From Octopus bimaculoides (lineage: Eukaryota), in NCBI RefSeq assembly GCF_001194135.2, contig NC_068994.1, positions 3,882,793-3,946,792 on the forward strand: a DNA stretch of 64,000 nucleotides, given 5' to 3'. The notes under the pieces were generated by a model. The model did not search any database. It had not been told where the DNA came from and saw only the letters and a list, made by a program, of their open reading frames with translations. Within the stretch, counting starts at the first letter, position 1, and each line of letters opens with the position of its first letter. A program made the position numbers and the translations under genes. This document shows, piece by piece, positions 59,600 through 61,945 of this stretch.

Positions 59600-61945
59600 A
59601 TGGAGAGGTCTGCCGGGATTCCAATCTATGGTGAAATGTATGGCATGCCATTCCATCACAGACTTCCTACACCAAGAATGCCAACCCTTAGTGACTTTTC
59701 TGGCAAGCATTTCGGCCAGGAACATGCTCTTGATACTCAGAGGATGGCTCCGTTAGGGGGCAAGCAATTTCCTATTCATAGCTCACAGAGTTCTCACTCG
59801 CAGCAAAGGATGACACCGATTGCTGAGAAATCCAGCCATCACCATAGCAACAGTTCTGGGAAGCACATTCACCATCGACATAGTTCTTCTCATTCACACA
59901 GCTCTCAAAGAATGTTAGAACCCGGTGAGAAGTCTATCCATAATAGCAGCAGTGACTCTGGGAAGCAGTACTCGCATGACACCCACAGGATCTCTCATGT
60001 GGCTGAGAAATCTTCCCATAGTTCCGGCAAGCATATGTCTCATGGAAGTTGTCAGGAGACTCCAAGGATGTCACATGTTCCAGAGAAAAACATTCACAAC
60101 AGCATCTCTAGTAAACAGATCTCTTCCCACAGACATAACTTGGAGAAGGAGAGAATAGCATCACCAGTTGACAAACCAGACAACAACAGCAACAGTGACC
60201 TGTCTGGGAGCCAGTTCTCCCATGAGTCAACTATAGAGAGCCAGAGACTGCCACTGCCCTATATTGGTCAGACAGTGTTTCCTGGTAACAATATGTACAG
60301 CAGCCAGTATTCTCAGCCGTGTTACTTACCGACGACTGACAGAATGCAGTCAAGCTTGGAGAGCGGACAATCATCTAAGGAGAGTTCTTCTCAAAAGAGC
60401 TCCACTGCTAGTATTGATAAATCATTCCATGGTGATGTGTCTCAAAAACAATATGGCCCGAACAAATTGTCGCCAACCCAACCCAAACCACAAGTATTGA
60501 GGCAGCTCTTCTGCGATTACTGTGGCAAGAAGTTTGCTCAGGAATATTTGATGCACATGCACCGAAGGAAACATACTGGAGAGAAACCGTTCCAGTGCGA
60601 CGTCTGCAACAAACAGTTCTCTCGTAAAGATGTTATGAAAAGACATAAGAAAAACCATATGGAGGGTCTTGTCCAATCCCCCAAAGTTCTTGGAAACAGC
60701 TACCAAGTTCCTATGCAAGAGAATTCTCAGATGGCAAAAAAACAGTTTACGCCTGATAAACTATTTCAATGTGATGTATGCATGAAATATTTCGGTACAA
60801 GGAATTATCTTGAAATTCACAAGAGAACTCATACTGGAGAGAAACCATTCCAATGTGACTTCTGTATCCAAAAATTTGCTCGAAGAGACACGCTTCAAAT
60901 CCATCGGCGCACCCATACCGGAGAGATGCCATTCCAATGTGAAGTCTGTCAAGAGAGATTTTCACAGCGAATAAAACTTCAGATTCATCAGAAAACACAC
61001 ATTTTGAAGAAACGGCACCAATGCGAATTTTGTCTGAAGCACTTTGCACAAAGATATTACCTTCAGATCCATCGACGACTGCACACCGGTGAGAAACTGA
61101 TGCACTGCGACATTTGCTTGAAGAAATTCACTCAAAAACATTACTTAATCATTCACAGGAGAACCCACACGGGAGAAAAACCATTCCAGTGTGACTTCTG
61201 CATTCAGAAATTTGCTCGCAAAACAACTCTTCAAATTCACCGGAGAACTCACACGGGGGAAAAACCATTCCATTGTGAGATTTGTGACAAGAGGTTCGCT
61301 CAGAGCGATAAGTTGAGAGTTCATCGTCGCACCCATGCACCGAAGCGTCAGTACCAATGCGATATTTGTTTAAAGATGTTTGCCCAAAGACATTACCTTC
61401 ATGTCCATCAGAGGTCTCACACCGGAGAGAAACCGTTCCAATGTGAAGTTTGTTTCAAACAGTTTGCTCAGAGAAACACATTACAGATACACAAGAGAAC
61501 ACACACAGGAGAGAAACCATTCCAGTGTGACGTCTGCCTCAAGAACTTTGCCCATAAACATTATCTAAGATTACATAAGAGAACGCACACTGGAGAGAAA
61601 CCATTTCAATGTGACTTCTGCCTGAAGCAGTTTGCTCAGAAAAATTCTTTGAAGATCCATTGTCGAACACACACTGGTGAGAAACCGTATCAGTGTGAGA
61701 TATGCTTCAAGTCTTTTGCTCAAAGACAATACCTGCGATTGCACAAAATAACACACAGTGGAGAGAAAGCTTATCATTGTGATATGTGCCCAAAACAGTT
61801 CACACGAGGTGATACTCTGCAGAGACACAAGAAAACTCACAATGGACCCCAACCAAGCAGTAAACCTCACAAAGTGTCTGTTAATTCCAACAATAAAACA
61901 ATTGAAGAGTTTCCACCAATGAGCACATACCTATGGCAGCTGTAG
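59600..61945 (+). CDS. C2H2 zinc-finger protein 'ZNF-B', 781 aa, single coding exon; 15 fingers (2+13); paralog of ZNF-A
   Basis: Uninterrupted ORF with 15 fingers. The track start at 59573 is a TTG just after an in-frame TAG; the first in-frame ATG is 59600 (ATCATGG, A at -3, G at +4). Both proteins start MER and end ...YLWQL*. Confidence 0.95.
   Translation: [781 protein letters not shown]

Follow-up and report, generated by a model that had tools for sequence, protein, structure and literature searches.

A conserved C-terminal peptide in two zinc-finger genes of Octopus bimaculoides and their cephalopod relatives

Two zinc-finger genes and the tail they share

C2H2 zinc-finger genes are very numerous in cephalopod genomes. 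Two of them lie in the stretch of Octopus bimaculoides DNA analysed here (64,000 nucleotides of contig NC_068994.1, hereafter the window), and both end in nearly the same short peptide, which we call the tail and which is the subject of this study. ZNF-B occupies 59600..61945 on the forward strand as a single open reading frame (ORF) of 781 residues, running from MER to the stop and containing 15 C2H2 fingers, arranged as an N-terminal pair and an array. ZNF-A occupies 13796..17128 on the reverse strand, also as a single ORF from MER to the stop, with 1110 residues, 18 C2H2 fingers and polyglutamine tracts. The two genes are about 42 kb apart in divergent orientation, and no other long ORF in the 64-kb window is free of gaps and low-complexity sequence. 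Both are annotated as single-ORF genes on CM046614.1 of GCA_001194135.2, where the window covers about 3,882,793-3,946,792, and the product of ZNF-B exactly matches its annotation.

The tail and its TAG stop span 61892..61945 on the forward strand in ZNF-B (17 residues, 765-781, ending in TYLWQL) and 13796..13849 on the reverse strand in ZNF-A (17 residues, 1094-1110, ending in DYLWQL). While 16 of the 17 residues are identical, the codons differ synonymously at six places (AAG/AAA, CCG/CCA, AGT/AGC, TAT/TAC, CTG/CTA and CTA/CTG), which amounts to 6 of about 10 synonymous sites, and the one replaced codon, GAT/ACA (D/T), is changed at all three positions. To compare regions of the two genes, we used Nei-Gojobori counts of nonsynonymous (pN) and synonymous (pS) differences, taking the tail as 17 codons. 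The tail had a pN of 0.06 and a pS of 0.67, and its pN was the lowest of all gene regions, zinc fingers included; among the others, the finger array had 0.16, the N-terminal finger pair 0.19, the N-terminal region 0.44 and the inter-finger linker 0.63. The spacer between the last finger and the tail (17 residues at 61841..61891 on the forward strand in ZNF-B; 22 residues at 13850..13915 on the reverse strand in ZNF-A) is not conserved, with 4 of 14 residues identical and a pN of 0.43 directly upstream of the tail. Considering that pS was saturated throughout (0.78-0.88), the duplication is old, and gene conversion cannot account for the identity of the tails.

Given the overall identity of 39% at aligned non-finger positions, at least 16 matches in 17 would arise by chance with a probability of about 3e-6. 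The tail was also the top-ranking gap-free 17-residue window outside the fingers in the alignment of ZNF-A and ZNF-B. Nucleotide similarity between the genes ends at the stop codon, beyond which the 3′ flanks could not be aligned. To judge by the codons, purifying selection acts on this short peptide at the level of the protein. Several claims of a preliminary description of this DNA were borne out: the 16 of 17 identical residues with six named synonymous differences and one replacement read exactly as claimed when we returned to the sequence, the spacer before the tail is as unalignable as stated, and the codon counts agree with the purifying selection proposed there.

The tail is not the sole conserved island outside the fingers. 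ZNF-A and ZNF-B also share the N-terminal MER, EKSxHS..SGKQY repeats and a VFPxNN island. This second conserved non-finger island covers 20 residues at 60272..60331 on the forward strand in ZNF-B and 19 residues at 16004..16060 on the reverse strand in ZNF-A, and its F, Q and Y are invariant across seven members of the family described below. The N-terminal finger pair of ZNF-B lies apart from the main array at 60512..60658 (forward strand) and ends in RHKKNH, and its counterpart in ZNF-A lies at 15509..15655 (reverse strand). The N-terminal halves each carry four tandem copies of a degenerate repeat of about 30 residues with the core EK[SN]xHxxxx[SG]K[QH][YIM], at residues 156, 192, 226 and 254 of ZNF-A (window positions 16300-16700, reverse strand) and at residues 76, 110, 136 and 162 of ZNF-B (59800-60130, forward strand). 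This repeat is a candidate for another linear motif of the tail-bearing family, one present in several copies. Several long polyglutamine tracts (CAG/CAA) are present in ZNF-A and not in ZNF-B, and ZNF-A also has three extra fingers. One 28-residue finger occurs twice in ZNF-A, which suggests internal duplication of a finger block.

The tail-bearing family in cephalopods

A full-length protein search listed 120 matches, of which eight were cephalopod relatives and the rest mostly generic vertebrate proteins with many zinc fingers. All eight cephalopod relatives end in a version of the tail, which none of the 112 other listed zinc-finger matches does. Directly before the stop, P0013 of O. bimaculoides ends in NNMEELSPMNNYLWQL, P0015 from an ENA assembly in KEEDMQPMSPYMWQL, P0022 from a sequencing run in NEEQLPSVDPYTWQL and P0036 of Acanthosepion pharaonis (CAE1321465.1) in NEEDIPPMTPYMWSL. 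P0048 from Sepia ends in NNTIELQPLNKYMWLQ, P0021 from the same run in KPIHEFPSVTSYLWQL, and P0031 and P0032, from O. vulgaris and Argonauta hians, respectively, in KPIHEFPSVTNYLWHTI. A cluster look-up added further KPIHEFPSVTNYLWHTI-type copies from O. sinensis and O. bimaculoides, together with near-identical transcripts. The family thus consists of ZNF-A, ZNF-B and 11 others, making 13 proteins from at least six named cephalopod species, all with the tail; the 11 others come from O. bimaculoides, O. vulgaris, O. sinensis, Argonauta hians, Acanthosepion pharaonis, Sepia and two further decapodiform sources, and the sample is without close Octopus orthologues of ZNF-A and ZNF-B.

The consensus of the tail is [ED]-Φ-x-[PS]-Φ-x-x-Y-Φ-W-x-Φ(-x)-stop, where Φ is a hydrophobic residue and the Tyr and Trp are invariant. 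The family pattern Φ-x-[PS]-Φ-x-x-Y-x-W-x(1-3)-stop, following a C2H2 array, was found in ZNF-A, ZNF-B and all 11 relatives. A scan of the window and some 110 kb of fetched loci in all six frames found the strict tail pattern only at the ends of family genes, and the flanks of the relatives yielded no further tail-bearing ORFs. A P0048-type protein is encoded in the runs SRR19578108 and SRR20545811, with the stop directly after the tail. Since these runs are Sepia esculenta larval transcriptomes according to published papers, and the protein is present in their RNA-seq assemblies, this member is expressed and its mRNA closes the ORF right after the tail. P0036 is labelled 'KRAB' by its source, although no KRAB Pfam family is listed for it; its N-terminus could not be aligned with its orthologues, so the start of the gene model is probably wrong.

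To place the members, we constructed a neighbour-joining tree with bootstrap from 400 gap-free columns. ZNF-A and ZNF-B grouped together (86%), P0013 of O. bimaculoides grouped with three decapodiform orthologues (92%), and P0128, P0031, P0032 and P0021 formed a separate clade, denoted as clade 2 (100%). The Sepia paralogue P0048 was placed at only 34% bootstrap. Because octopods and decapodiforms are each represented in the P0013 lineage as well as in clade 2, at least these lineages, together with the tail, are older than the divergence of octopods and decapodiforms. The four O. bimaculoides members P0128, P0013, ZNF-A and ZNF-B, all of them single-ORF genes, lie on CM046614.1 at 3.24, 3.73, 3.90 and 3.94 Mb, within 0.7 Mb. 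In the octopus-cuttlefish orthologue pair P0128/P0021, the 12-codon core of the tail shows six synonymous differences and one replacement (pN 0.04, pS 0.78).

With the fingers masked, the tail was the sole sharply defined segment common to both main clades, at 50-59% identity over 14-18 residues, and the N-terminal resemblance between them was diffuse and repeat-based, at 18-25% identity. The island pattern VFPxxxYxxx[FY]SQxCYLP is common to ZNF-A, ZNF-B and the P0013 lineage, weak in P0048 and absent from clade 2, which also lacks the N-terminal finger pair but keeps the tail. The clade 2 relatives P0128 and P0021 carry a related N-terminal repeat, EKxxxxxx[IL]YSK[ED][LFY]. In the clade 2 octopods (P0128, P0031 and P0032), the spacer of 62-63 residues is strongly acidic, and a spacer island, REKELTMLCDVSPKTE[EQ]YVLQ, is conserved between Octopus and Argonauta.

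Between the last finger and the tail lie 8, 15, 17, 22, 33 or 62-63 residues, depending on the member. Such variation indicates that it is the C-terminus, and not the finger array, that sets the position of the motif. After the Trp there are two or three variable residues (QL, SL, LQ or HTI), giving ends that include YLWHTI-stop and YMWLQ-stop, so that a fixed reading of the free carboxylate, as for a PDZ-type ligand, is unlikely. Consequently, the stop-anchored motif of the preliminary description stands in one respect and falls in another: the motif always ends one to three residues before the stop, but strict anchoring is contradicted by the varying ends.

Known domains, known motifs and predicted structure

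Pfam searches with ZNF-A and ZNF-B (E ≤ 0.01) returned zinc-finger families only and no KRAB, SCAN, ZAD or BTB, and the tails alone gave no Pfam match at E ≤ 10. None of the family members from the full-length search lists PF01352, PF02023 or PF07776. In the PDB, the tail sequence and the tail profile found chance-level matches only (E 0.66 and 7.8), and a literature search with the strings YLWQL, YMWQL, EEFPPM and IHEFPS yielded no relevant paper and one irrelevant match. Of two papers on zinc-finger genes, PMC12513265 (2025) treats the cephalopod C2H2 expansions and PMC10547256 (2023) metazoan zinc-finger evolution. Neither gives a C-terminal peptide motif or an effector domain for cephalopod zinc-finger proteins; the words 'C-terminal' and 'effector' occur in neither, and one of them uses 'motif' for predicted DNA-binding motifs only. 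A 25-position profile of the tail was also run with HMMER, exhaustively, against 1.84 billion representative proteins (E ≤ 0.001); the four matches returned are all family members already in the query.

On these searches, the tail appears to be restricted to a coleoid family, with sequences from octopus, argonaut and cuttlefish. As far as sequence can tell, the large octopus C2H2 expansions are without the tail, the family that bears it is small and old, with about 4-5 genes per genome, and as a motif the tail is undescribed, although its general kind is familiar. Four further points in the preliminary description agree with what we found. It had seen no KRAB, SCAN or ZAD in these genes, and Pfam shows no known domain besides zinc fingers; it had supposed the tail to be lineage-specific, and in the HMMER search the tail does appear lineage-restricted; conservation in other species is provided by the octopus, argonaut and cuttlefish orthologues and paralogues that carry the tail; and a match to a described domain was found neither in Pfam, the PDB or the literature strings nor with any regular expression for a specific motif.

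For the latter comparison, we ran approximate regular expressions for known motifs, after ELM, on 12 tails. The expressions for eh1, CtBP PxDLS, HP1 PxVxL, LxxLL, CoRNR, the MDM2 box, the LC3-interacting region, SUMO and the SUMO-interacting motif each matched none of the 12, and neither did PDZ classes 1-3 at the free C-terminus ([ST]/Φ/[DE]-x-Φ). The pattern ΦxxΦΦ, which is very permissive, matched 11 of 12. The tails contain 6-8 hydrophobic residues in 20 and have a net charge of 0 to -2. The spacing of class 1b nuclear export signals, Φ1xxΦ2xxΦ3xΦ4, was present in 12 of 12 tails if Tyr and Trp are counted as Φ, and in none with the published residue set, which consists of Leu, Val, Ile, Phe and Met (PMC5358978).

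Among known systems, the WRPW, WRPY and YRPW motifs, by which Hairy/E(spl), Runx and Hey proteins recruit Groucho/TLE, resemble the tail in being short, aromatic and located at or near the C-terminus of a DNA-binding transcription factor. A non-conserved spacer tether precedes each, and each serves, or in the case of the tail is proposed to serve, as the effector where there is no folded effector domain. In contrast with these motifs, the aromatic residues of the tail are split by one hydrophobic residue, there is no Arg/Lys-Pro, and 12-14 residues are conserved instead of 4. The analogy to WRPW/WRPY drawn in the preliminary description therefore fails at the level of the pattern, as the WRPW-type expression [WFY][RK]P[WFY], also approximate, is absent from all 12 tails.

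The acidic-hydrophobic ΦxxΦΦ activation motifs (of p53 TAD1/9aaTAD type, contacting KIX, TAZ and Mediator) share with the tail one or two upstream acidic residues, richness in W, F, Y, L and M, a disordered context and a predicted short helix. However, the net charge of the tail is just 0 to -2, the MDM2-type F-x3-W-x2-L spacing is absent, and activation motifs are usually far more tolerant of substitution than the invariant Tyr and Trp of the tail would allow. Leucine-rich export signals of class 1b show the same hydrophobic spacing as the tail, prolines before the last hydrophobic residues and one predicted helical turn, whereas the invariant Tyr and Trp at Φ3 and Φ4 of the tail do not belong to the published residue set (PMC5358978). 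As for the proposed role, KRAB, SCAN, ZAD, BTB and FiNZ are likewise lineage-specific non-finger modules that define C2H2 subfamilies. While those modules are folded, N-terminal, 40-100 residues long and found in families of hundreds, the tail is C-terminal, has about 14 residues and occurs in about 4-5 genes per genome.

To see how the tail might fold, we made two AlphaFold2 (AF2) runs on C-terminal fragments of ZNF-B and P0128 with family alignments of 10-12 sequences. In the ZNF-B fragment, spacer residues 70-86 had a predicted local distance difference test score (pLDDT) below 50, the last ten residues averaged 70, and a helix was placed at TYLWQ. In the P0128 fragment, the spacer averaged 45-49 and the tail 59-60, with a one-turn helix ending at the Tyr. 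The tail was not confidently packed on the last fingers in either run. This is the pattern expected of a conditionally folding linear motif, at which it hints only weakly because the alignments were shallow and the models held no partner.

The window also contains features of other kinds. A (CAA)n(CAG)n microsatellite lies at 62046-62093, about 100 nt 3′ of the ZNF-B stop, in the presumed 3′ untranslated region. An ORF at 939-1685 on the reverse strand, interrupted by an N gap, resembles the C-terminal part of ORF2 of a retrotransposon without long terminal repeats (..RLRWFGHVVRM..); Pfam gave no match for this ORF, so the assignment is tentative. Runs of N, representing assembly gaps, are found at approximately 1000-1300, 8500-8850, 41550-42250, 43260-43580, 47420-47770 and 54820-55400, and long TA, TACA and TG-rich microsatellites occupy much of the region from 35 to 47 kb.

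Possible roles of the tail

The explanation we favour, and to which we give about even credence, is that this C-terminal peptide serves for docking: carried on a flexible tether, it would be recognised by a conserved partner whose pocket requires the Tyr and the Trp. The disordered spacer of variable length would tether the tail to the DNA-binding array. In contact with a conserved nuclear partner, the residues that follow the proline or prolines would fold into about one helical turn, and the invariant Tyr and Trp with the flanking hydrophobic residues would be inserted into a pocket of that partner. Recruitment of an effector or co-regulator would thereby be given to proteins without KRAB, SCAN, ZAD or BTB. 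Binding of the tail to another protein, and a transcriptional co-regulator as that protein, are inferred, and the cofactor docking or transactivation proposed in the preliminary description is likewise a candidate function.

The alternative that survives best, though we regard it as fairly unlikely, is that the tail is a nuclear export signal for CRM1/exportin-1, with its hydrophobic residues in the exportin groove and the proteins shuttling out of the nucleus. The class 1b spacing, which all 12 tails show once Tyr and Trp are counted, is indeed the feature most strictly kept across the clades, and some known export signals are loop-like, contain proline and make a single helical turn (PMC5358978); AF2 gives the tail one helical turn as well. 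With the published residue set, however, no tail matches, and PMC5358978 reports that only about 50% of consensus matches bind CRM1 and that no natural unambiguous class 1b signal had been verified. Furthermore, Φ3 is Tyr and Φ4 is Trp without exception in paralogues older than the divergence of octopods and decapodiforms. Considering that export signals normally exchange aliphatic residues, this invariance points to a specific pocket.

It is also conceivable, but in our view improbable, that the tail acts within the family by binding another island of its own protein or of a paralogue, leading to auto-inhibition or to homo- or hetero-oligomerisation in the way that SCAN and ZAD dimerise. The other short conserved islands and the N-terminal repeats could provide a receptor, and the retention of four O. 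bimaculoides paralogues on one chromosome would suit such contacts. Clade 2, however, keeps the tail in the absence of both the N-terminal finger pair and the VFP..CYLP island, so no single candidate for an internal receptor is conserved along with the tail, and AF2 shows no confident packing of the tail on the last fingers.

We find it harder still to see in the tail a C-terminal degradation or stability signal, read near the free C-terminus by a ubiquitin ligase adaptor. The position of the motif, one to three residues from the stop codon in every member, fits such a signal, but its final residues (QL, SL, HTI, LQ) are the least conserved and the constraint reaches 12-14 residues inward. Known C-degrons include Gly-, Arg- and Glu-ended types, and the tail is unlike these. 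Finally, that the tail has no function of its own, its likeness being due to chance, recent gene conversion or a nucleotide element over the stop codon, is barely credible even for so short a segment, since 16 of 17 residues are identical in spite of the many synonymous differences (with the chance figure of about 3e-6), the motif recurs in at least four paralogous lineages and at least six species with different codons and stop codons, and nucleotide similarity ends at the stop; chance and gene conversion as sources of the identity are effectively refuted by the codon evidence, the chance figure and the recurrence across species.

Returning to the docking motif, several points weigh against it. 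The tails are only weakly acidic, which is atypical of strong activation domains. The P0013 lineage keeps the tail at the level of the pattern only, with a pN of 0.35-0.44 between octopus and decapodiform orthologues, so that the constraint falls on the hydrophobic spacing and on the Tyr and Trp, and a generic signal, for example for export, could yield the same. The rise in AF2 confidence at the tail is modest and comes from the shallow alignments of 10-12 sequences. In addition, the restriction to coleoids comes from one profile search, which is weaker for diverged tails, and should be read as the best current statement rather than as proof. As to the kind of contact that the docking motif would make, we lean slightly, and on weak grounds, towards an activation-type acidic-hydrophobic ΦxxΦΦ contact over a Groucho-type corepressor contact, because the tail has a ΦxxΦΦ core with acidic residues upstream of it, and because the spacer is strongly acidic in clade 2.

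More tentatively, and with clearly more doubt than confidence, we suggest that the tail could be the effector module that defines a coleoid-specific C2H2 subfamily older than the split between octopus and squid/cuttlefish. The tail would then represent a new C-terminal Tyr-x-Trp docking class recruiting a specific co-regulator, as a linear counterpart of KRAB/ZAD, and the family would belong to the 'coleoid-level' duplicates of PMC12513265, which are the most highly expressed and nervous-system-associated class of C2H2 duplicates in that paper. No effector domain or cofactor link for cephalopod C2H2 genes is given in PMC12513265 or PMC10547256. The family marked by the tail is small and old, with about 4-5 genes that are linked on one chromosome, and is distinct from the mass expansions. 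As for the tail itself, as a short, strictly conserved peptide with an invariant Tyr and Trp it offers a concrete handle for mutation, for use as bait and for co-regulator screening. While the find would be routine if the tail proved to be an export or stability signal, a general co-regulator as the partner would make the tail the first effector motif assigned to a cephalopod zinc-finger family.

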